From positions 1-38,706 of the forward strand of contig NW_021836766.1 in assembly GCF_006345805.1 (NCBI RefSeq): a stretch of 38,706 nucleotides of DNA, read 5' to 3'. The notes under the pieces were generated by a model. The model was not told the origin of the DNA and searched no databases. It saw nothing but the letters and a program-made list of their open reading frames with translations. Positions 2,581 to 34,005 of this stretch are shown here, piece after piece (positions within the stretch are counted from its first letter, which is position 1; each line of letters opens with the position of its first letter). A program made the position numbers and the translations under genes. Source of the stretch: Octopus sinensis (lineage: Eukaryota).

Positions 2581-3900
2581 GTTTCATTTTACTTATATTA
2601 GCCATGTGTGATAGGTCAATATGTAGTTATAAACGAGACATTTACAAAAATATCCCAAGGCCTCTTCGGAGATTATGAAATACAAACCAAATTAAATATA
2701 CACCCATATAAGTGCGGGTACATACCCATAATATATCATATACACATACATATGAGTGCATATACTCATACTACTATACATATATATATACATATACATA
2801 ATAATATAAATAATATAAATCAATAAACATACATATGTTCCTTATTCAATGTTACAGTTTTTCAACTTAATATTATGATATTACAATGTAGAAAACATAC
2901 ACATATTAATACCCAAATGCAGATATACAGAGTCAAGAGTACATTATATTAATTTATATCAATTTACAAAATGTCATTAATGTTAACATCATTACTATTA
3001 TCATTACCACTAATGCTACCAATATCATTATTCTTATTATTAATAACATTAATACTAGCAAAACAATATATAGATCACATTATTAGCAACATAATAGCAA
3101 AACCAAGAACAACAATAGTACTACAGTACCATGCAAAGCATTAAATATCTGCATGAGAAATAAAAGCATTTGGTTTACATGATATTAAGTTCCACAGGTG
3201 TATAAATGTACATACGAGTGCAATTTATAATTTCAACTGTTGTAATATCATAATATTAAGTTGAAAAACTGTAACATTGAATATGGAACATATGTATGTT
3301 TATTGATTTATATTATTTATATTATTATGTATATGTATATATATATGTATAGGAGTATGAGTATATGCACTCATATGTATGTGTATATGATATATTATGG
3401 GTATGTACCTACACTTATATGGGTGTATATTTAATTTGGTTTGTATTTCATAATCTCCGAAGAGGCCTTGGGATATTTTTGTAAATGTCTCATTTATAAC
3501 TACATATTGACCTATCACACATGGTTAATATAAGTAAAATGAGACACCCATATCTGCATGGCTGAAACAGCTGTAAGAGGTAGTTTATATTTATATTTAT
3601 ATTTATATTTATTTATATTTATTTATATTCTCTTATACATATTGTACTTATTGTATCATATTACTCCTTCATGTACACTGTTTTGTTCTATATTATTATG
3701 TTTGACCTTAATGTTCATATGTATGTGATTGGGTATTATCTGGTAGTTGATTATTGATTAAGGCGTATTTCTCTATTTTCTTATTTTGTATTATTAATTT
3801 GTGGTAAAACATTTTACCTTTGCCCATATAATACAGTAAATGAATTAATTGCATCGCAATTCTTAACATTTATGTATAACTTTGTTGGGTACTTCACCAG
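2581..3900 (+). mobile_element. Penelope-like element remnant with an inverted 5' duplication and a hammerhead-bearing terminal repeat
   Basis: 2581-2886 is the reverse complement of 3240-3545 (306 bp, about 7 mismatches by eye). The sense copy continues into GAAACAGCTGTAAG and an AT-rich tail resembling 21840-22080. No ORF remains, so the family assignment is inferred from architecture. Confidence 0.55.
3453..3579 (+). ncRNA. Type I hammerhead-like motif, family C, with a ~92-nt insertion in stem II (core variant CCGAAGA)
   Basis: ATCT-CCGAAGA-GGCC-[92 nt containing TGGG...TGTCTCATTT/AAATGAGACA-CCCA hairpin]-GGCT-GAA-ACAGCTGT-A-AGAG. Confidence 0.5.
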
Positions 3901-7345: not shown

Positions 7346-8399
7346 GGGAGAAGTGTAGATAAGTAGATATAGAGATATAGAAAGAATGAAAAAGAGAGAC
7401 GGAAATGTTGATAGATAGACACATAAATAGGAAGAGAGAGAGAGAGAAAAGGAGAGAGAAAAGGAGAGAGGAAGGGAGAAGCCGGTAATCCTGGTGAAGA
7501 CACCAAAGTAGGAAGAGGAGAGAAAGAGCGGAAAGCGGGAATGTGGAATGGGAGTAGCGGCATGAGGAATATAATATAAAGCAGAGAGGGAAAGATTGAG
7601 TGACTACGGATGTGTGTGTGTGTGTGGTGCATTTGTAATAAGTGGCCTGACACCAGTAGCAGTAGTGTAAGATTTTTTTTTTTTACCTGTGAATATGAAA
7701 GAGGTAAGAGGTTTCTGTGACGAGTGGGGGAGGACAGTGAAGAAGTTTACGACAAGTGACTTGCCCTGAGTAAGGTTTGGACTGGAAAGAAAAAGCTACG
7801 ACAATCAATTTTTTTTCGTTGAGAAAAACAATAACAAAAAAAACTATTAGTGATACAGATGTCCATGTATCTCTCTCAGGTGTTACAGATTTATCAGAAA
7901 CACTACAAACCTACCTGGGATACGCAGCCGAAGTCAATATTTGCAGTGAAAATGACTCGAGAGAAAGTTACGGCGATTTCTTGGATTATTATTGTTGTTG
8001 ATATTGCTGTTGCTGGTGTTGCTCTTTTCGATTTATTTTAATCTGTTGAGTGTAGTTAGGTGATTTCGTTGCTTCAGCCCACTCACGCACATAGAAACAC
8101 ACACGAGCACACATGCTGATATATATACACACACACACACACACAACACACACAGATAACTATAAACTCACACATACATGCATACATACATACATAGAAA
8201 TAAAGCTCGATCGGTGGTAACCTAGGGTCGTACAACATAGAAATACACACACACACACACAAACACACTTAGAAACACGCACTGACACAAATATAAACAC
8301 GTTCACACTCGCATATATACACAGACACATAAGTTTACACACACACACACACACACTCTCTCACTCACTCACACACGCACACATACACACAGAGGCAAT

Positions 8400-8690
8400 A
8401 TGAGCTGCACCATGTCGACATCGGCGCCAGGGACAAACTCGACTAGAAACGGATTGTGTAACCCGGTTCGTCCCCGGAGTCGATCGCTGAACGATCTGCC
8501 GGGAGGTTTGAAAGTTCCTCTATTGAAAAGACCTGAACGTTTAAAACCAAGGATCCAGGCTGTCCTGGCCGGCCTGGACGAACTCAGGTTACTGAAAGAT
8601 CAACACAAAAACTTGGTGGATGAGGCCAAATATGGAGACATTTCTAATACCATCAACAGTGACAGCATGCAAGACTTGTTTACGCAACAA
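8400..8690 (+). CDS. dact: First coding exon (97 codons) of a Dapper/DACT-like protein; rest of the gene not seen in the window
   Basis: ATG at 8400 opens a normal-composition frame. Residues 46-76 (ERLKPRIQAVLAGLDELRLLKDQHKNLVDEA) match the N-terminal motif of vertebrate DACTs as I recall it (DACT1 ...[29 protein letters not shown]). The frame ends at CAA|GTGAGT (8690/8691), a strong phase-0 donor, after which the sequence becomes (TTA)n and TE DNA. Confidence 0.75.
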
Positions 8691-8696
8691 GTGAGT
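8691..8696 (+). promoter_or_regulatory. 5' splice donor of the Dact-like exon 1
   Basis: CAA|GTGAGT matches the U2-type donor consensus and falls exactly where coding-like composition stops. Confidence 0.75.
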
Positions 8697-8724
8697 ATAA
8701 TTTATTATTATTATTATTATTATT

Positions 8725-8903
8725 TGAATCTTTCGAAGCGCCTCCCCCTATTGGGAGTTTTTCGTTGTTATATTATTTGATTGTTACACTGTTTTTACAC
8801 GATTTTTTCACAAACGGACAAACCCCCTTGTAACCTTTCGTCCTGTTTTGTCCCTTTATGTTTTCTAATCATGTGTGTCAGCCCTTGTGGCCAATAAAAA
8901 GAA
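8725..8903 (+). mobile_element. 3' UTR fragment of a Tx1/L1-like LINE
   Basis: The layout (TTGTTATA...TTTTACAC...CCCCTTGTAACC...CCCTTGTGGCCAATAAAAAGA) parallels the 3' end of the Tx1-like copy at ~10400-10542. Confidence 0.45.
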
Positions 8904-14001: not shown

Positions 14002-15379
<1,378 letters not shown>

Positions 15380-15675
15380 TATATACAGGTTGTTCAATCG
15401 ATGAATAGCCTACGCGTAAACCAATTGGTTCGTTTCATTCTCTTACTTTATTATTATTATTATCATCTTATAATCATCTCATAATAATGACCTTTATGAC
15501 TCGTATTACTACTTCAGTCAATCTAAATATATATATTTGTCACTACCTGTCATAAATAGCGTTTTCTATCTGCAATATGCATTTTCGTTGATTTTTCATA
15601 TTTTACCCTTACATTTCCACGTGTATTTTATATTTTCTTTTCGTAACATATTTCTACTATATATATATACATATA

Positions 15676-15806
15676 TACGACGGGTCTCTTTCAGTTTCCA
15701 GCGACCAAATCTATTACAAGGCTTTGGTCGGCACGAGCCTGTAGCAGAAGACACTTGCCCGGAACCATGTGGTTGGGAAGCGAGTTTCTCACCACACAAC
15801 CACGCT
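15676..15806 (-). mobile_element. SINE family A, 5' half with an internal deletion
   Basis: Matches 28930-29090 (CGACGGG..TTTCAGTTTCC...GACACTTGCCC|GGAACCATGTGGTTGG). Confidence 0.75.
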
Positions 15807-17274: not shown

Positions 17275-17667
17275 TCTTTTCTTTTATTTGTTTCAGTCAT
17301 CTTGACTGCGGCCATGCGGGAGCACCGCCTTTAGTCGAACAAATCGATCCCGGGACTTATTTTTTGTAAGCCTAGTACTTATTCTGTCGGTCTCTTTTGC
17401 CGAACCGCTAAGTTACGGGGACGTAAACACACCAACAACGGTTGTCAAGCGATGGTGGGGGAGAAGCACAGACATATAATTCCCCCCCCACACACACATA
17501 TATGATGGGCTCCTTTCAGTTTCCGTCTACTAAATCCACTCACAAGGCTTCGGTCGGCTCATGGCTATACTCGAAGAGTCTTGCCTAAGGTGCCACGCAG
17601 TGGGACTGAGCGCGGAACCATGTGGTCGGTAAGCAAGCTATTTACCACACAGCCACTCTTGCGCCTA
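17275..17667 (-). mobile_element. SINE family A, full length
   Basis: Colinear with 28693-29097. Head GGCGCAAGAGTGGCTGTGTGGTAA...GGTTCCGCGCTCAGTCCCACTGCGTGGCACCTTAGGCAAG. Confidence 0.9.
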
Positions 17668-18125: not shown

Positions 18126-19301
18126 TGTGTGTACTCTACCGTGGGGTATGTTAGTTATAAACTGCTCACGGGGCCTGGTTACATCTCAACTATCCGTGCA
18201 GGCATTTCAGAAGTATTCATTACCTTACCGGTTTATCCGTCTCACACATCTCCCCTATATGCTCTGAAGCCCAATGGTATATCACGAGTCCCTTATATTC
18301 AGATGAAATGAATTTGAGTTAGAGGAAGAAAATGTCAATAAAAAAGAGGGTTGTGGGGTCATTAAATTTGGGCATTAAATTGCATTTCATTTAAATATAA
18401 TTAAAAGTGGGACTATTGTATCGTGTCTACAACAGGCCAATAACAATGTAGGGTGCGTGTGTCTGTTATTTTTTATGCTCAGTTGCTAGGGTCTCTGTGT
18501 ATTTTCGATAGCTTTATTTGACGTTACGTCGTATGCTAACATAATTTCTTTCGTATTGCCTATCTGCTGAATTTCATAACAATTTCCTTTTAGTGTTGGT
18601 CACATATTTATGAAACTCCAGGAGTTCTTCTTATTCTCCAGGTATCTTAATTTTCTTCGTATATCTCTTACAGCTGGCCATTAATGTCTTTAGCCACTGA
18701 CATGCTTAAGGCACCGTGGCCAGCCTCAAGAGAAGAACTAATAGCCAAGTAATGAGAGAGTTGCCTAATCAGAAATTCGATGGAAAATACAGAAGATGGA
18801 CGTCTCAGTGAAGTGAGCAAATACCGGTAAACAGCTTGCAGGAGCTGGCAGTAATGATCGACGTGTTAATAAACACAATGTTTAGCCGAGAATAGACTAA
18901 ACACGGCATCTTCAGTTATATGTAACACTCTTGAGAAAAATATTTCGTATTAAAGACTAGCTTCGAAGATGAGAAAACTCTCTTTTAGATTGAATCTTTC
19001 TCTCTTACTCGAACACATTCCATCTGAATGGGTCGTTGTGCCCCACCGAGCTTTCACAGTATATAATAGAGTTTAGTGAAATAGGTAGACAGGTATCTGG
19101 AACAAGGCAGTACCTCTGAATTGTCTGTATGAGTAGTTGAGATGTAAGCAGATCCTGTGAACGGTTTATAGCCAGTGTACCGGGTGATAGTGTCCTCAAT
19201 TCTAGTCGTTACACCATGCTTCATTCATATCTCTACATAAAACGCTTTGTCCAAGATGAGGACAATAAATTCACCTGGTGAAATATGGGCAAGGAAACAA
19301 G

Positions 19302-19366
<65 letters not shown>

Positions 19367-19379
19367 TAATATATGTACA

Positions 19380-19654
19380 ATATATAATGTATTATGTGTG
19401 TGTAATATATGTAATATTATGTGTGTAATATGTGTACAATATATATGTATATATATTGTTAATACATATATACTATTATATCTACTATATATATATTGTA
19501 TATATATATATTATAGGTATTTATATAATCTTATATCTTATATATATACCCTATACAAATATCTATATATATTGTATAATATATATATATATATCTATAT
19601 ATATATATATATATTGTATATTGTATATATATATATATATTATACCTATAATAT

Positions 19655-19693
<39 letters not shown>

Positions 19694-19774
19694 ATATATA
19701 TTGTATTTGTCTATATATATATATATAATATATATATATATATAATACCTATAATATATAATATATATATCTAT

Positions 19775-19806
<32 letters not shown>

Positions 19807-20005
19807 GGTATTTGTTATATATATATAATATATAATATATACCTATATATATAATATAATATATATATTAATATATATATATCTATATATTAGTTTATAT
19901 TGTATATATAGATATATATATATCTATATATATATCTATATATATATATAATACCTATAATATATAAATTACATAATATATAATACATATAATATAGATG
20001 ATATA
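19380..20005. repeat. Long degenerate (TA)n low-complexity array
   Basis: Direct reading. Confidence 0.9.
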
Positions 20006-20087
20006 CATCATATATATATATACATATTGTATGTATATAGCAGATATGAATATGTATATGTGTATGTATCACGTGTGTGTAGCTTTT

Positions 20088-20250
20088 ATCTTTTATCTTT
20101 TACTTGTTTCAGTCATTAAACTGTTGCCATACTGGGGCACCACCTTGAATACTTTTTTAAGCCTTGTACTTATTCTATCGGTCGCTTTTGTCAAGCTTCT
20201 AGATTATGGGATCGTAAACAAACCAACGTAAGTTGTCAAGTGGTGGTGAA
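20088..20250 (-). mobile_element. SINE family A 3' portion, degenerate
   Basis: CTTTTACTTGTTTCAGTCATT...GTACTTATTCTATCGGTC...GTTGTCAAG. Confidence 0.7.
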
Positions 20251-20325
20251 GAGCAATATAGTAATGGTTGCTGACCTATTTTTGTGACTGTCCCTCTTCC
20301 AAATTTGGCAATACAATACTGCTAT

Positions 20326-20464
<139 letters not shown>

Positions 20465-20590
20465 AGTACTTCTCTTTCAGTTGTTCCCACCCCGTTGTAA
20501 CCTGCCTTCACCTAGTCTATTTAAACATCTTCCCCCAGTTTCCCCATGCAACACCCATTCTTCAAATACTCCGGTCGGTATTTTCAGCGA

Positions 20591-20685
20591 TGGCTCTGAC
20601 GAAGGTCGTTCAATTTACCTCAATTGATCAGTAGACCAATTGAGTAAACCCATCTACAATGACTACTTGAAACAGCTGTAAGCCA
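20591..20685 (+). ncRNA. Type I hammerhead ribozyme, family C, intact core with an extended branched stem II
   Basis: TGGCT-CTGACGA-[AGGTCGTT...CTCAATTG/CAATTGAG hairpin...AATGACTACTT]-GAA-ACAGCTGT-A-AGCCA gives a 5-bp stem I and a GUA site at 20678-20680. Confidence 0.65.
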
Positions 20686-20906
20686 AATTTACTCTGATAA
20701 AGGAATTATGTATATACAATTAAGATTCAGTTGAATTAGGTACTTAAATTGGGGTCCCTTGCAAGGTCTGAGTAACATGCATACCCAACAATATTAAGTG
20801 AATATCAGACTTAGTGCATAAGTGCCGGCCATATGATGTTCTTGCAGTGTATGCAGATAATAAGACCCAGCTAAGTGCAGAATTCCGCTCTTAGCTATTC
20901 AGACAT

Positions 20907-21467
20907 GTTAGTTAGTTAGTTAATTTTTTGGCTCAAAAAGCAAAAAGCAAGGCCATGTAGGGGGACATGGAGTTATGTACAGGGTGGTGTTCATATAAAG
21001 AGTTCAGGCCACTTGAGGTCAAGGGAGACTTTGAACCGAGCGGTCGTCGGCATCTTCACCATCTCGTCTGGCAGCTTATTCCACGGATCCGCAACCCGGA
21101 CGGAGAAAACCCCTCTCCTTCGATTGAGATGAAATCGTCCCAGATAGAGCTTTTCGGAATGACCCCGCAGCCGACGCTCTGGAGCAGGAGTGAAGAACAG
21201 CTCTTTTGAGAGGTTACATTTTCCGCTTATGATGTTGTGAGCAAGAATGAGATCACCACGGCGTCGTCGTTTTTCTAGAGAATAAAGGTCGAGCGTCTTC
21301 AGCCTTTCTTCATAAGACAAATTCTTGAGACCAAGAACCATGCGGGTAGCCAGCTTCTGGACTCTTTCGAGATGCTGTGTGTCTTTGAGGAGATATGGAG
21401 AAGAGGCTTGAATCCCGTACTCCAATATGGGTCTCACCAGCGTGACATAGAGAGGGAGGAATATGGC
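20907..21467 (-). mobile_element. CR1-clade LINE, 5'-truncated, with intact 3' end and (TAAC)n tail
   Basis: LYVTLVRPILEYG..ASSPYLLKD...LERVQKLATRMV.GL..LSYEERLKTLDLYSLEKRRRRGDLI...RGHSEKL...FSVRV...WNKLP is the CR1 ORF2 C-terminus. Confidence 0.9.
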
Positions 21468-21570
21468 ATGTACTTTATATTAAAAATATTGTCTATAATA
21501 TTTATGAAGCGAAAATTCTAGGATAGGTGAATAAAATATGAATAACAAAGAGGTACAAGAGTCAGTTGAT

Positions 21571-21733
21571 CACGGTCGTTTCTAACGATTCATTTAATTG
21601 ATTAATGAAAGCAATACATCATTGCAAAGAAACCGTTTTCGTCTGAGAAATTCATGATTTTCAAACATACGGTCTCTTTGCAATGATGTAATGGTCCCAT
21701 TAATCAGCTAAAGGAGTCGTTAGAAACGGCTGT
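21571..21733. mobile_element. Palindromic MITE-like fold-back (~163 bp, ~32-nt loop)
   Basis: CACGGTCGTTTCTAACGA...TACATCATTGCAAAGAAACCGT pairs with ACGGTCTCTTTGCAATGATGTA...TCGTTAGAAACGGCTGT. Confidence 0.7.
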
Positions 21734-21802
21734 AATAAATTGACACCTGTACCTCCGTTTTACTCACTTATATGTATGTATGTATGTATGTATATATATA
21801 TA

Positions 21803-22080
21803 ATATTGACCAACCATAAAGGGCTAATATTGGTAAAATGAGAATACTTATCTACATGGCCGAAACAGCTGTAAGATATAATCTATACTTGTATTTATAT
21901 TTACTTATATTTATATTCCTCTTTAGATATATTCTACTTATTATACAACATTACTCTTTTATGTACACTTTTTTATGTACTTTCCTTATGTACACTGATT
22001 TGTTCTGCTTTTTTTTATTATTTACCCTACAGTCCTTATGTGGTGGTTTAATAAAGTATGTGATTATTATCTAGTAATTG
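21803..22080 (+). mobile_element. Penelope-like terminal-repeat fragment carrying the 3' half of hammerhead family C
   Basis: ...GTAAAATGAGA...ATCTACATGGCC-GAA-ACAGCTGT-A-AGAT followed by an AT-rich tail similar to 3580-3850. Confidence 0.6.
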
Positions 22081-22834
22081 GTATTTGATTTCAGCAACGA
22101 ATGTGTTTAGATCAGATTTGCATCATAAATGTTTGAAAGGTATCTATGTTGAGGTCAATGGGATCCAGTTTTGTGGAAATCAACTGAAAAATATTTGATG
22201 ATATATTGATGTAATCAATCCTTGTGATGTACGCACCTATCAGTGCATTTAAAAAGGGGACTGACCCTTAAATGTGTACCCTAAGCACATAGGCGAGAAA
22301 TCCCTTTTTGTGTAATTGGGTCACAGGATATTTCATACAATGGAAGTGGTTTACCTTTTTGTTCTTGTAAAACTTAATCATTAAAATGTCAAGGATATTC
22401 ACTTATTCAGTACGTGTCACCCCAAATATTACCCTTAACGAATGTAAAGGCAGGAAATGGATAGTGATTTATTTCTATCCTCTAGTAACTGACCCTAACT
22501 GCACTTCTAACGTGAGCTCTTGTTTAAATATAAATTACAGTGAAGCTATCAAAATATCTTGAGCTTGGTTTCCGAATTTTGCCCCGAAACAGTTTATCTC
22601 ACTCCTTTCAAATAAATAAATCTGATGAGTATTTCTTTGTAAACAAATTAGTCAAGTGACTATAGCCTTGGTAGCTTAACAATATGACACTGATATATAA
22701 AACAGGGGTGGCCAATCTTGCTTAATTTAAGAGTTACAACCAATAAAGTTCAGGTGTTTGAGAGCCGTAACACATGGACGACATTTAAACTATAACAAGT
22801 AGCTTGAAATTAGTGTGTGTGGTGTGTGTGAGAA

Positions 22835-22835
22835 A

Positions 22836-22905
<70 letters not shown>

Positions 22906-22908
22906 AGA

Positions 22909-22940
<32 letters not shown>

Positions 22941-23130
22941 AGAAGAAGAGGAAGAAGAAGAAGAGGAAGAAGAAGAAGAAAGGAGAAGAAAAGAAGAAGA
23001 AGAAGAAAAGAAGAAGAAGAAGAAGAAGAAGAAGAAGAAGAAGAAGAAGAAGGAAAGGAGAAGAAAAGAAGAAGATGAAGAAAAAAAAAGAAGAAGAAGA
23101 AGAGAAGAAGAAGAAGAAGAAGAAGAAGAG
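22835..23130. repeat. (GA)n followed by (GAA)n microsatellite
   Basis: Direct reading. It produces the spurious poly-E/K/R ORFs. Confidence 0.95.
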
Positions 23131-23487
23131 TGAAAACGCTATCAGGAGAACAATGGTTTAAGTGACGAAACAAGCAATGTTGGACAATAGTAGAGAAAAT
23201 GAGGATTTCTAGAACGATTATAGAGAGGAGCTTATAAAATAGTTTGTTGCTTCTTGAATGGGTCATTATGCAAAGAATAAGCGAGCGCGTGCACACAAAC
23301 ACACACGCACACACACAAACTGAAATAGGGCAAGAAATAAGAGATTGCTCTGGGCTCGCATAAAGCAAGAAGTTGAAGCTTTTTCTGCATTGTCAAACAT
23401 TTAAACCAAATTTTCTCAAAGCAATTTGTGCGACTGTCCCATAGTCCGTCCCTTTGGGAAGCACTGATTTAACCTAAATTTAAGACA

Positions 23488-23896
23488 CCAGCAAAAGAAG
23501 AAATAACGATAGACATTTTTTCTATTCCAAAGAAAAACGATTTCTGACGGCTTTATCGATCGCACTCTCACCTGACATCGATTTTTGTAATTTTTTCAAT
23601 ACTTATACACGCCCTGATACCGTCGGTATCTACATATCAAATTTGAGCGCAATCGGATCCAGCAAAAGAAGAAATAAAGGTAGACTTTTTTTCTATTCCA
23701 AAGAAAAACGATTTCCCACGGCTTTATCGATCGCACTCTCACCTGGCATCGATTTTCGTAATTTTTTCAAGACTTATACACGCCTTGATACCGTCGGTAT
23801 CTACATATCAAATTTGAGCGCAATCGGATGGAGGATGCCCGAAATCCTAGAAGACACACACAAAGACAGACAGACAGAACAGATTTTATATAATAG
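23488..23896 (+). mobile_element. Helitron-like non-autonomous 3' end with a 171-bp tandem duplication
   Basis: Units 23488-23658 and 23659-23829 end AAATTTGAGCGCAATCGGAT, followed by (GACA)n and TTTTATATAATAG. This resembles invertebrate non-autonomous Helitron ends. Confidence 0.55.
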
Positions 23897-24173
23897 GTAC
23901 GGATATTTGATTGTTCGTTCCTGTCCGGACTATAAAAGATCTTTTTATATTTTCTGTTGGTCGTAATTATTCGTACCAATATGTAATTCCTGACGGACGA
24001 AGAACCTAGTTTTTATTTCAAGAAGAGTCTTTCGTTTTTGTTTTTGGAATTAATTAAACCCCGAAGGAAGTTTTTGATATATATATAATGGTTTTTTTAC
24101 CAACTTTTCCTTTCTTTATACTTTATATATGGATTATAATATACATATTCATAAACCTACATACATGCATATA

Positions 24174-24209
<36 letters not shown>

Positions 24210-24478
24210 TGTGTGAGTGCACGCGCGCGTGTCTGTGTGTTTGTGTGCGTGGAAGTATACAAACATCGATCCCCAGCCCCTCCCACTACTGTAGATTTTT
24301 GTATTTAGGTTAAGTGTGAATACTGAGGGTGAATGTAGTGGTATGGTTTTGATGTCCGTATCCACAATATACCTTCAGGTTCTCACGATAATATGCGCTA
24401 ATACATAGATACAATCACACACACACATCCACCACCACATATATACATACATAAATGCATTACATATACATACATACA

Positions 24479-24515
<37 letters not shown>

Positions 24516-24646
24516 ATATATATATATATATACGTATATAAAATCACGTGTAAGGTATATTTACCTATTGTGCAGATATCCTGTTTATAATTCACAATTA
24601 TAAATATGTCTGTGTAAACATTACTTATATATATATATATACACAC

Positions 24647-24677
<31 letters not shown>

Positions 24678-24731
24678 CGCACAACCCCACACATATATAT
24701 ATATACATATATATATACACACCACACATAT

Positions 24732-24764
<33 letters not shown>

Positions 24765-25454
24765 TATATAATATATATATTTTGTATGCATGTATACACA
24801 CACATTCATTCGTGCATACACACACGCACACAGACACACACACACACACACACACACACAGATGTGCGTGCGTGGCGTTGACAAACCCCCGCCGACGACT
24901 GCCCCCCCCCCTGATAGTAAGAGCTCCGACTCCTCCACACAATTTACGCTAGTTATTCAAGTTATTACACCATAAGACACTACCAACAGTCTATCGGTCG
25001 GTGTGTGTACCAACACGTTGCTATGGTTTCAGTTTTGGGCATGAGTGAGTGGTGGGGGTGGGGATAGGGATGGGGAGGAAGGGATGGATCCGCTCCAATG
25101 GTGTAGCACGCAATTATTCAAATGTTAACGTGTTAGCATAGTGGTGTGTGGGTGGGAGTGGGGGTGGGGGCGATGTGGTGTAGCTGTTGTTATTTAGCTC
25201 CAGATCAACCCTGAATCGCGTATGTTTTTCCAATCGAAAGCCTTCCAATCGTGACCACCTTGTCTTTTCCAGATGTGCAGGGAACCAGAACTACATCTAA
25301 CATACCCTTTTCTAAGACAGTAGCGTGATTTTGAAGGAAATTTGGCTGCTATTTCTAACTCGTTGTGTGACCACGTACGGGGTCTTTTGTTGCCCTCTGG
25401 TGAGTTGTATTGCTACAAAGCATTGCTGTGGTTTAGTGTGATAGTTACTAATAT

Positions 25455-25759
25455 CACGTGATCACGTGACCGACCAGTCTATCAGATGTTGTTACACATC
25501 GCTGGTCACAATGCGTTCGCATTGTTTTAGCCTTCGAATGACGCCACCCCGCTGGCTAAGCGGGCAGGCCAACAGAAGAAAGAGTGAGAGAAAGAGTGGT
25601 GAAAGAGTACAGCAGGGATCACCACCCCCTGCCGAAGCCTCGTGGAGCTCTTAGGTGTTTTCGCTCAATAAACACTCACAACGCCCGGTCTGGGAATCGA
25701 AACCGCGATCCTGCGACCGCGAGTCCGCTGCCCTAACCACTAGGCCATTGCGCCTCCAC
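25455..25759 (-). mobile_element. tRNA(Arg)-like SINE family B, full length, with a 12-bp TSD
   Basis: AGTTACTAATAT at 25443-25454 and 25760-25771. The head has A and B boxes; the tail is TCACGTGATCACGTG. Confidence 0.92.
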
Positions 25760-25859
25760 AGTTACTAATATATAGTTCCCTATCGGTGTGTCACAATGGT
25801 GTGGTTGTGTGAGGTATGTAGTGGAGTGAGACTTTGGCGTTGTAATTATGTAGGGCAGC

Positions 25860-26135
25860 GGCCCCTAACTTCTTGTGCATCACGGATCGTTTTCATGTAA
25901 GACAATTTTTCCACGCACCGAGAATAAAGTGCATATATTGTAAGACAATTTCCTGGCAACGTTTTTGTTCTCCTTCCATGACATCTGAGCATCGAGTGAA
26001 CCCTGCTTCCGACGAATCCGCTCACACCTATCTCTATAGGAAAGCTTATTGCCTCCCAGCCATTATTACTGACATTAAATTCAGTGATCTGGGCAAACAT
26101 GAAAACGCAAAGTGTATTAAGGGCGATATCTGAAC
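25860..26135 (-). mobile_element. HERO-like RLE-type LINE, C-terminal fragment
   Basis: FAQIT..VSNNGWEAISFPIEIGVSGFVGSRVHSML resembles the GW..xPxEVGxRGFxG motif of HERO-type elements. Confidence 0.6.
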
Positions 26136-26440
26136 CCAGTTATTTAGGGCAACATATTAAATTTGATAAAATATCTAACCTAGTTCTCCTCTCCGCCTAA
26201 CTCTCCACCTCGTATCTTAGAGATTCCACAGAGAGGAATTAATTCTGGTGTGGACAATCGTAAAGCAGTCCCATTAAAGCTTTCAGTTGCCCATGGTAGG
26301 GTTTGAACTCAACACGGCAGGGTAAGGAAACACACAACAGTCATAATACTGGTGTTGCTTTTTACTAGCTTATGTGCTTGAGATCCTGAGATGTACCTAA
26401 AAAGAATCAGCGAATTCGGATTCCGGTTTTTTCTGTTTTT

Positions 26441-28692: not shown

Positions 28693-29097
28693 TACTCTTT
28701 TACTCTCTGTTACTTGTTTCAGTCATTTGACTGCGGCCATGCTGGAGCACCGCCTTTTAGTCGAGCAACTCGACCCCGGGACTTATTCTTTGTAAGCCCA
28801 GTACTTATTCTATCGGTCTCTTTTGCCGAACCGCTAAGTGACGGATACGTAAACACACCAGCATCGGTTGTCAAGCAATGCTAGGGGGACAAACACAGAC
28901 ATACAAACACACACATATATATACACATATATACGACGGGCTCCTTTCAGTTTCCGTCTACCAAATCCACTCACAAGGCTTTGGTCGGTCCAGGCTATAG
29001 TAGAAAACACTTGCCCAAGGTGCCACGCAGTGGGACTGAACCCGGAACCATGTGGTTGGTAAGCAAACTACTTACCACACAGCCACTCCTGCGCCTA
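28693..29097 (-). mobile_element. SINE family A, full length, little diverged
   Basis: tRNA-like head GGCGCAGGAGTGGCTGTGTGGTAAG...GGTTCCGGGTTCAGTCCC, a core GGCACCTTGGGCAAGTG, an internal (TA/TG) tract and a (GAGTAAAA) tail. Confidence 0.92.
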
Positions 29098-30819: not shown

Positions 30820-31309
30820 TTGAAGATGTGTATGCTTTATATATGTATTCTCTTGCATATTGCTGTATATCTAGACATGCTCATATATATTTAAATGATA
30901 AGCTTCTGGAAAATTTTACAGATGTTTACAGTTCCAGTGATGGATTGGATCTGTAGTCTTAGAATTAGCTTTCTCTTTTCTGGTTTTGATAAGCCTGATT
31001 TCTCGAGATTGGTATTTAGGCAATGTGTTACATATCCCAGGGCCCCAGTAATCACAGGTATAAACCTGAACTTGTAATCTGGATAGAGTAACTGCAGATT
31101 CCTCAGTAGTTCAGCATAGGAGTTCACTTTTTCACTAATCTTCAGCTTTATGTTAACATCTGCTGAGTTGCTAATTTACACAACTGTGCACAGTTTCTAT
31201 TCTCTATTCATCATATCAGGTCTGTTGTGCTTACATTTTATTGAGGTTTTCGCTGGTACATTCCACCAGTATTCCTTTTTATTATGAGTGGCTATGACTT
31301 CTACTATAC
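30820..31309 (-). mobile_element. R4/Dong-clade LINE 3' fragment, same subfamily as 5765-6420, with intact 3' UTR
   Basis: EYWWNVPAKTSIKCKHNRPD...YAELLRNLQLLYPDYKFRFIPVITGALGYVTHCL...LQIQSITGT. Confidence 0.85.
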
Positions 31310-31374
31310 TGTATGTATGTATGCATGTATGTATGTATGTATGTATGTATGTATGTATGTATGTATGTATGTAT

Positions 31375-31943
31375 TGGTGAGGGTAGATGACAGGTGTCTT
31401 CGGAACCTCCTTCACATCCGCTGGCAGGACAAAGTCCCAGACACGGAAGTTCTGAAGCAGGCAGATCTCCCTAGCACCATCACGATCATGCGCAAGGCCC
31501 AGCTGAGATGGGCAGGCCACGTCTCCCGCATGTCCGACACTCGCATCCCAAAACAGCTCTTCTACGGTGAACTCAGCCAGGGCAAACGCAAAGTCGGAGG
31601 GCAGAAGAAGCGCTTCAAGGACAGTCTCAAAGTCTCTCTCATAGTCTTCTCCATCGGCACAGAGACTTTGGAGACACTTGCTGCCGACCGCTTATCCTGA
31701 CGCAGCACAATCACCACAGGAGCAAAGACAGCCGAGGAGAGACGGATTCAGTCAGCAGAACAGAAACGCCAGATGCGGAAAGCCAGAGCCACCTGCACCA
31801 ATAGCACAGCCCCTACCCACTTCTGCCCCACTTGTGGGAGGGGCTTTCTTGCCCGGATTGGCCTCACCAGCCACCTCCGGTCTCATAGTAGCAATTCCAC
31901 CAAATGATGTCAATGGTCATCTTCGAACCCGAAGGACGAACAT
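31375..31943 (+). mobile_element. RTE-clade LINE, 5'-truncated, intact 3' end
   Basis: RCLRNLLHIRWQDKVPDTEVL...AQLRWAGHVSRM.D.RIPKQLFYGEL..GKR..GGQKKRFKD...CPTCGRGFLARIGLTSHLRSH. Confidence 0.92.
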
Positions 31944-31982: not shown

Positions 31983-32630
31983 CTGGATCAAGGTGTACCG
32001 GGCTGTTCTCACAACGCTGCTTTACGGCTGCGAGTCCTGTACGGTCTACCAGCATCATGCCAGGAAGCTGGACCACTTTCATACAATATGCCTCAGAAAA
32101 TTTCTCGGCATAAAGTGGCAGGACAGGATCCCGGACACCGAGGTACTAATACGTGCTAACCTGCCCATCATCCATGCCATCTTGATGCAGTCCCAGCTTC
32201 GCGGGGCAGGGCACGGAGCTCGCATATCAGACGATCGATTACCAAAAAGATTGCTCTTTGGCGAGCTGCAAAGGGGAAAGCGCTCACAAGGTGGCCAGAA
32301 GAAGTGCTTTAAGGACCCACTGAAAGCCTTCAACATCGACCATGGCACTTGGGAGCAGTCTGCTCTAGACATAGAAGGGTGGAGATCAGCTATCCCCAAG
32401 GGTGCCAAGACATGCGAGACCAATAGGATCGCTGCTGCAGAAGACCGCAGACAAGCCAGGAAGAACAGAGCTAACAACCCTGTAGCAGGCGCTACCATTC
32501 CCTGGCCACACTGTGAAAAGACTCTTTCGGGTGCAGATTGGCCTCGTTAGCCATCTGCGGACTCACAAAACAAGCTCACCCCCACCCTAGGATGAATTGA
32601 TGGTCTTCGTCACATCGACGGACAAACTAC
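31983..32630 (+). mobile_element. Second RTE-clade LINE (different subfamily), 5'-truncated
   Basis: KVYRAVLTTLLYGCES..VY..H.RKL..FH..CLRK.LGIKWQDRIPDTEVL...RLPKRLLFGEL..GKRSQGGQKK. Confidence 0.92.
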
Positions 32631-33446: not shown

Positions 33447-33450
<4 letters not shown>

Positions 33451-33905
33451 CATAAGGGACTAAAGCCATCTGAATATGGCTAGGGACAGGGCAGGGTGGT
33501 GGGGGTGTTACTGTTGCATTTAGCCCCAGGCGAACATCAACGTCGCCAGATAGGCTTGACACCATCACGGTGTCCTTTATCCTGCTAAGGGAGATAATTC
33601 CCCGATGAAGCGGAAACCAGACACGGACCTAGGTTTCAAGGTGTATTGCCTATCATCAACGTGTGGTAGGCCCCCGCTTCCTCGACGAACAACCCACTCT
33701 GCAGGATATTTATATATAGATTTTCAAGCAAAATACATTTGCTGATTTCGAAAATCTGTTCGACAGCAATAATAATTCTCTAAATGAGATATAGACAGTA
33801 ACTGCTCCATAACATAAGGGACTAAAGCCATCTGAATATGGCTAGGGACAGGGCAGGGTGGTGGGGGTGTTACTGTTGCATTTAGCCCCAGGCGAACATC
33901 AACGT
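33447..33905 (+). repeat. 97-bp perfect direct repeat (33447-33543 and 33809-33905) flanking 265 bp
   Basis: The two copies read identical by eye, from ATAACATAAGGGACT to GAACATCAACGT. Confidence 0.9.
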
Positions 33906-34005
33906 GGAAAGAAAAGCCTACGGAAAAGACCACGGTAACCTCGGTCAATGAAGTCACATGTTATATTTCTTTCTTTTTTTTGCAAATAAGCAACTCTCTG
34001 TATTA

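Follow-up and report, generated by a model that had tools for sequence, protein, structure and literature searches.

Can an adaptor of the DACT (Dapper/Frodo) family be encoded outside the chordates? The question is raised by a short exon in the genome of Octopus sinensis, located within the first 38,706 nucleotides of contig NW_021836766.1, the whole of which is referred to here as the window. The family is regarded as an addition to Wnt/PCP signalling that is peculiar to chordates. The survey of Schubert 2014, correctly cited by the sequence-only reading that had singled out the exon, reported dact in chordates only, with Aplysia being the sole lophotrochozoan searched, and a 2025 Nature Communications paper still terms Dact1 chordate-specific and explains vertebrate convergent extension on that view. 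No report of a non-chordate DACT came up in full-text literature searches; an apparent literature match for Dapper was to an author so named. On the evidence set out below, the octopus gene probably specifies a scaffold protein of considerable length, rich in serine and for the most part disordered, which would be distantly related to the chordate DACT adaptors yet devoid of their leucine zipper.

The first coding exon of this mollusc DACT-like gene lies at 8400–8690 on the plus strand and comprises 97 codons, from the start codon to a phase-0 splice donor. An ATG at 8400, in the context GGCAATATGA, opens a frame without a stop until 8780, and after exactly 97 codons this frame meets a consensus donor in phase 0 (CAA/GTGAGT, with the exon boundary between 8690 and 8691), which confirms the exon as originally described; its translation is MSCTMSTSAPGTNSTRNGLCNPVRPRSRSLNDLPGGLKVPLLKRPERLKPRIQAVLAGLDELRLLKDQHKNLVDEAKYGDISNTINSDSMQDLFTQQ. 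Towards the N-terminus, the alignment of the mollusc family delimits an RSRSL site followed by an LPG box, RPRSRSLNDLPGGLKVPLL (8469–8525, plus strand, residues 24–42), with L, P and G unchanged throughout and R-S-R-S-L as the majority consensus. The RPRSRS string previously noted in this N-terminal extension as an RxRxxS site is indeed present at residues 24–29. The site is of the basophilic RxRxxS / RxS type and, judging from its sequence, would be a target of basophilic kinases. The RSRSL-LPG box is restricted to the mollusc family and falls outside chordate DACT motif 1; the longer RSRSL..LPG..RVP arrangement, placed before motif 1, is an extra, invariant feature of the mollusc proteins in comparison with chordate DACT. 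Next comes the 31-residue peptide quoted earlier, ERLKPRIQAVLAGLDELRLLKDQHKNLVDEA (8535–8627, plus strand, residues 46–76), an amphipathic α-helix and the counterpart of DACT motif 1 according to Pfam Dapper, hhalign and AlphaFold2. The exon closes with the conserved tail SMQDLFTQQ (8664–8690, plus strand, residues 89–97), which recalls by eye only the DACT motif 2a found at the end of exon 1 (..KEQL), the motif 2a strings having been taken from Additional file 9 of Schubert 2014. When modelled by AlphaFold2 with a 28-sequence N-terminal alignment, the exon forms one helix over residues 47–87, with a pLDDT of ~96 in the motif-1 core, while the RSRSL-LPG box is non-helical with a pLDDT of ~67. 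A profile search of the PDB returned no related solved structure.

Evidence that the exon is genuine comes from its closest relative, the protein P0001 encoded by a 1.2-kb Logan contig (L001), which shares 64% amino acid identity with it. The P0001 reading frame runs into an intron at the equivalent codon (..VKQ/GTAGGT), that is, the octopus donor GTGAGT (8691–8696, plus strand) and the L001 donor GTAGGT follow the same codon, and the preceding DMQELFVKQ of L001 is the equivalent of the octopus exon tail. The alignment covers 94 codons, of which 18 match exactly, 42 carry nothing but synonymous changes and 34 are non-synonymous, the differences being distributed 35/20/65 over the three codon positions, and the flanks showed no nucleotide similarity by blastn. 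It follows that the protein sequence was conserved whilst silent sites became saturated; the exon is thus, as judged by this substitution pattern, protein-coding and under purifying selection. A mollusc-family HMM run against the six-frame translation of the window gave the exon as its sole match (E = 5e-25). With regard to its surroundings, the exon is an island of ~48% G+C flanked by simple repeats: on one side, a (CA)n-rich microsatellite at 8236–8395 reaches the start codon; on the other, an (ATT)n run at 8703–8725 begins 12 nt past the donor. Rfam and tRNA scans of the whole window gave no matches.

The gene that begins with this coding exon is mollusc-wide. A phmmer search of 1.84 billion representative proteins yielded 31 relatives at E <= 1e-3, and those with a named source are without exception molluscs, either gastropods (Gigantopelta, three species of Haliotis, Lottia, Aplysia, Biomphalaria, Bulinus, Bradybaena, two species of Elysia and Plakobranchus) or bivalves (Sinanodonta, Mytilus, Saccostrea, Pinctada and Mizuhopecten). 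Representative accessions are XP_041357065.1 (Gigantopelta), XP_067678156.1 (Haliotis asinina), XP_021356803.1 (Mizuhopecten), XP_061167791.1 (Saccostrea), XP_013071269.2 (Biomphalaria), XP_035829130.1 (Aplysia californica, P0023) and XP_009045155.1 (Lottia gigantea, P0014); the Aplysia member is annotated as a 129-residue uncharacterized fragment. These uncharacterized mollusc proteins are 34–52% identical to the octopus exon over a 68-residue N-terminal segment, and they show the same box-then-helix order as well as the same size and phase-0 end of exon 1. Within the family, the octopus sequence and P0001 form the closest pair (64–72% identity), set apart by their common tail ..[DS]MQ[DE]LF..Q. 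It had been guessed that automated annotation might already use the label 'dapper-like', and this turned out to be wrong: in every source the relatives are called "uncharacterized" or "hypothetical", except for two misnamed members, and never dapper. One of the two, P0004 from Gigantopelta, is labelled 'LIM domain-containing protein A-like', probably an effect of its low-complexity sequence. No gene model including the octopus exon was present in the protein collections, and a look-up of the exact sequence of its open reading frame matched no record. The zipper-less, DACT-like mollusc family has gone unrecognised by annotation and, as far as we could find, by the literature.

Full-length members of the family range from 330 to 1355 residues and can be aligned only as islands. 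In the family alignment these are the N-terminal box RSRSLxELPGxLRVPIL; the helix RLEAxxAGLxELxxLRExQ; a serine-rich SLSSIxEE block; RRAS[IF]QCExVLT, followed ~15–20 residues later by xP[SG]PLHAVxxQY; a D[DE]GY[SIV]TCDS block in many members; and the C-terminus [QE]-T-x-[V/L]. The loci of oyster, mussel, scallop and abalone all divide the coding region between two exons, a first of 93–109 residues and a single large terminal one, with 5, 12, 22 and 46 kb of intron between them. The mussel donor is in phase 0 (..SQEK/gttggt), and the abalone acceptor lies at ..tttag/LNQRRMS. Furthermore, transcript-like Logan contigs of 2.4–4.5 kb hold joined open reading frames of 701–964 residues that extend across both exons, and given introns of 5–46 kb this means that exons 1 and 2 are spliced together in these relatives. 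In the octopus window, neither tblastn nor six-frame searches with mollusc and DACT1 HMMs revealed further exons of the gene, and past 8690 the plus strand has no open stretch longer than ~300 residues. Since nothing more of the gene lies in the window, its intron 1 (8691–38706, plus strand) is at least 30 kb long, with at least 30,016 nt of it in the window, where microsatellites and the remains of transposons fill it. By comparison with its relatives, the octopus gene would consist of exon 1, this long intron and a single large terminal exon, and that exon would encode RRAS-[IF]QCE-xVLT...PSPLHAVxxQY together with a [QE]-T-x-[V/L] end.

How far does the resemblance to DACT extend? The alignment of the exon with the first N-terminal DACT motif (consensus ..ERLEAxLAGLxELxxLRxxQ..), which the sequence-only reading had proposed, is borne out by several lines of evidence. 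In Pfam, Dapper is the sole family matched by the exon (E = 0.0016, residues 51–76 against model positions 2–27), although the score of 17.9–18.7 bits stays under the gathering score of 27. Among 28 non-redundant N-terminal segments of the family, 25 match the same Dapper positions 2–27 (best E = 8.8e-6), as opposed to 0/28 reversed control segments; Dapper is the only recurrent family, with all others matching at most two of the 28. Comparison by hhalign of a 14-protein mollusc alignment with 12 mammalian DACT1 sequences placed motif 1 against DACT1 43–75 with P = 8.7e-7 and a probability of 91.5% when the full alignments were used, and with P = 7e-7, versus 0.2 for the reversed sequence, when the motif-1 region was used alone. 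It is important to stress that only mammalian DACT1 stood among the matches listed for the DACT1 query, so that DACT2–4, lamprey and amphioxus are represented only by the motif strings of Schubert 2014, Additional file 9. Chordate-only HMMs were built from these printed strings (Dact1–4, lamprey and amphioxus) and used to score 16 mollusc proteins. The motif-1 HMM found its best match at the expected site in 16/16 (6.6–31.7 bits), and in all 16 its score was reached by at most one of 4800 shuffled decoys.

The initial call rested on a single motif of ~30 residues; in full-length relatives it is now accompanied by a second motif and by a C-terminal T-x-V/L tail. The second motif is 4b (PKYQCDLVS... 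in DACT), which is present in the relatives, and the octopus window ends before the exon in question. Mid-block segments submitted individually to Pfam gave no Dapper match, and for that reason a profile–profile comparison was needed: in hhalign, SIQCEAVLT..PSPLHAVxxQY aligned with DACT1 253–280 (P = 3.4e-4 with full alignments; for the 4b block alone, P = 3.9e-6 versus 0.28 reversed), and the motif 1 and 4b matches run in the same order in the mollusc family and in DACT1. The chordate-only motif-4b HMM had its best match on the PSPLHAV site in all 16 mollusc proteins, with a score reached by at most one of 4800 decoys in 12 of them. As for the tail, an xTV-type PDZ-binding end had been suggested as a check, and the outcome, obtained from relatives only, is partial: 27 of the 28 relatives of at least 300 residues (a set with several near-identical members of the same clusters) have a terminal [QE]T.[VL]. 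Such an ending differs from MTTV but has the form of a class I PDZ ligand, which is a generic type. On sequence grounds, the mollusc tail may correspond to DACT motif 11g. The distribution of the motifs over exons is also parallel, with exon 1 holding motif 1 and the large last exon holding both the tail and 4b in either family; a comparison of primate DACT1 isoforms showed an alternative exon 4 acceptor and did not reveal the exon 1 boundary.

Taken over their full length, chordate DACT proteins (PF15268; DACT1–4, lamprey dactA–D and amphioxus dact) and the mollusc relatives thus share the motif-1 helix in exon 1, the 4b core [YIF]QC[DE]xV... followed by PSPLHAVxxQ in a large last exon, a serine-rich and disordered protein (~330–1350 residues), a C-terminal tail of the class I PDZ-ligand type and conserved basophilic RxxS sites. 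In contrast, the mollusc proteins lack a detectable zipper (2a–c), DSRPSS-GFYELSDG (2d–f), 5a–c, 8b and 11d–f, their tail reads [QE]T[ASED][VL] instead of K-L/V-MTTV, and they are encoded by two coding exons, as compared with four in vertebrate and three in amphioxus dact. The leucine zipper deserves particular attention, being one of the two features said to mark the DACT family, and it was the second motif expected by the earlier proposal, an expectation that was not borne out: no L-x6-L-x6-L-x6-[LIVM] run occurs in any of 16 full-length mollusc relatives, DACT1 residues 98–186 gave no above-decoy match in the same proteins while the DACT1 control was positive, and six-frame HMM searches disclosed no zipper-like exon in the window. 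Moreover, the two-exon structure in molluscs leaves no place for small zipper exons. Motifs 2b–f are undetectable in the mollusc relatives, and the remaining DACT motifs gave no hhalign match. No counterpart was found of the Vangl-binding serine/acid-rich region (motifs 11d–f, SDSEYSAEC...); the D[DE]GY[SIV]TCDS block resembles 11d by eye and scores no better than decoys.

The Pfam evidence is similarly divided, with the exon itself matching Dapper below threshold and 16 full-length relatives giving no Dapper match at E <= 1 or E <= 10; that only excised N-terminal segments match is probably due to composition correction on long, low-complexity proteins. In view of the missing zipper and of the Pfam threshold, the gene was filed as DACT-like and not as a member of DACT. 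The reading of the exon as part of a true cephalopod orthologue accordingly stands as a partial link to DACT, through motifs 1 and 4b and the tail, and falls on the zipper and the Pfam threshold. A useful yardstick is amphioxus dact, the most divergent accepted DACT (Schubert 2014), which shows how far accepted members can drift: it has kept motif 1, shows 4b only in a degenerate form (YPYSPMHAI) and is without the MTTV tail. Unlike the mollusc proteins, it still has a 5x leucine zipper, encoded by an exon 2 of its own.

We lean, if only slightly, towards common descent: a single gene of the protostome–deuterostome ancestor, with a core of motif 1, 4b and a ligand for the Dishevelled PDZ domain, would have given rise both to chordate DACT and to the mollusc family, and the distribution of the zipper would reflect either a gain in the chordate stem lineage or a loss among molluscs. 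The principal alternative holds that the proteins are a mollusc-specific scaffold family without DACT descent, in which the helix, PSPLHAV and T-x-V/L arose independently or by chance; the motifs may, for instance, be convergent through binding the same conserved partners. We regard such an origin as rather unlikely, albeit compatible with a likeness that is limited to two short blocks (the DACT statistics rest on motifs of ~30 and ~14–28 columns), with scores below the Pfam gathering cut-off and full-length proteins devoid of a Pfam match, and with the absence of the leucine zipper. It would also accommodate the taxonomic gap, as nothing related was detected beyond molluscs and chordates. The search for non-mollusc intermediates, of which none was found, was limited: a profile search of a 5.8-billion-protein index with the full mollusc alignment returned six proteins, and low-complexity words filled the candidates, making it uninformative for other phyla. 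Finally, synteny support is absent. None of the DACT-associated families (Ehd, Eml, Fos, Mark, Rtn, Sipa1l) was identified among the oyster neighbours, which are a GPLD1-like gene (Pfam Zn_dep_PLPC plus FG-GAP) and a WD40-annotated gene model, and the mussel locus has no called neighbours. Against an independent origin stand two independent blocks in the same order, each with P ~1e-6 as opposed to 0.2–0.3 when reversed, the specificity of the Pfam matches (25/28 versus 0/28 controls), the correct best site of both chordate-only HMMs in 16/16 proteins and the parallel partition of motifs over exons; in addition, ~25 residues are long for a convergent motif.

At the other extreme, the octopus gene might be a full DACT orthologue whose downstream exons, situated beyond the window, supply both the leucine zipper and a tail of the MTTV type. 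The loose likeness of SMQDLFTQQ to motif 2a, located in chordates ahead of the zipper exon, could be invoked in its favour, and the downstream exons do lie outside the window. Nevertheless, none of the 16 full-length gastropod and bivalve relatives has a zipper, exon 1 joins the large terminal exon directly in 4/4 species, and 30 kb of the window are free of any zipper-like exon, which makes this reading highly improbable. Least plausible of all, to the point of being nearly dismissed, is assignment of the N-terminal helix to the CUPID (cytohesin ubiquitin protein inducing) domain family of the FRMD4/CCDC120 type, as suggested by the UniRef name 'Cytohesin Ubiquitin Protein Inducing domain-containing protein' for A0AAV4J2Z0 (P0025, Elysia marginata GFS17208.1), since that naming could not be reproduced with current Pfam, in which no CUPID match at E <= 10 was obtained for A0AAV4J2Z0, its close relatives or the 28 N-terminal segments, and Dapper was the only recurrent family.

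If the gene is a zipper-less relative of DACT, a mechanism can be proposed by analogy with the chordate proteins. In these, the C-terminal MTTV (K-L/V-MTTV) binds the PDZ domain of Dishevelled (Schubert 2014, Kivimae 2011), the region of the motif-1 helix and PSPLHAV has been implicated in vertebrates in Alk5 blocking and Tcf3 binding, and phosphorylation of DACT1 by PKA recruits 14-3-3 and blocks Dvl degradation. The mollusc scaffold would correspondingly bind a PDZ domain through its C-terminal tail, with Dishevelled as the most plausible partner, while the motif-1 helix and the PSPLHAV block might recruit additional partners, and the conserved RxxS sites (RSRS-L at S29, RRAS before QCE) could act as switches under the control of basophilic kinases, whether or not 14-3-3 binds as well. 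In DACT, the leucine zipper near the N-terminus (motifs 2a–c) is necessary and sufficient for dimerisation (Kivimae 2011). Because leucine-zipper dimerisation is unavailable to the mollusc proteins, any self-association would need to proceed through the motif-1 helix.

Should common descent hold, the label "chordate-specific" would be wrong and the origin of DACT would move to the bilaterian ancestor, with the zipper, and hence dimerisation, being separable from an older core. Molluscs, cephalopods included, would then own an unrecognised Dishevelled/PCP adaptor, and dozens of "uncharacterized" mollusc proteins, one of them in Aplysia, are flagged for re-annotation. The PDZ tail, too, would probably be ancestral. 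Schubert 2014 described amphioxus as lacking the PDZ motif and left the origin of C-terminal Dishevelled binding open. The amphioxus dact C-terminus is printed as ..HLVTEL in Additional file 9 of the same study, despite the text denying a PDZ-binding motif, and this ending is of the class I T-x-L form, as are the mollusc tails ETAL and ETSL.

A few further observations concern the neighbouring sequences. In the Saccostrea echinata locus (L004), a 766-residue neighbour that adjoins the DACT-like gene (18274–26143, minus strand) has many WD40 β-propeller Pfam matches, yet its visible exons look by eye like uroporphyrinogen decarboxylase, and the gene model may be a fusion. In the octopus window, intron 1 carries a decayed Tc1/mariner transposon at 14362–15340 on the plus strand (HTH_Tnp_Tc3_2, E = 3e-15; DDE_3, E = 2e-8), which is frameshifted and dead, as the two pieces lie in different frames. 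Three fragments of open reading frames, at 20991–21437 (minus), 31245–31697 (plus) and ~31990–32547 (plus), resemble by eye the C-terminal parts of LINE reverse transcriptases, with strings such as ..RWAGHVSRM.. and ..LEKRRRRGDLI..; two of them are adjacent, with a (TGTA)n microsatellite between, and none has a Pfam match at E <= 0.01. An interspersed, SINE-like repeat family of a few hundred nucleotides is represented on the plus strand at 17330–17557, 20121–20252 and 28756–28988, with a related piece at 15667–15732; two of the copies are 89–92% identical, and all share one orientation inside intron 1. Local duplications comprise a tandem pair with a 171-nt unit at 23488–23829 (95% identity) and 109-nt direct copies at 33447–33555 and 33809–33917 (362 nt apart, 95% identity). 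Upstream of the gene, a 307-nt inverted repeat at 2580–2886 and 3240–3546, with 98% complementary arms and a 353-nt spacer, has the look of a young element of the foldback or MITE-like kind.
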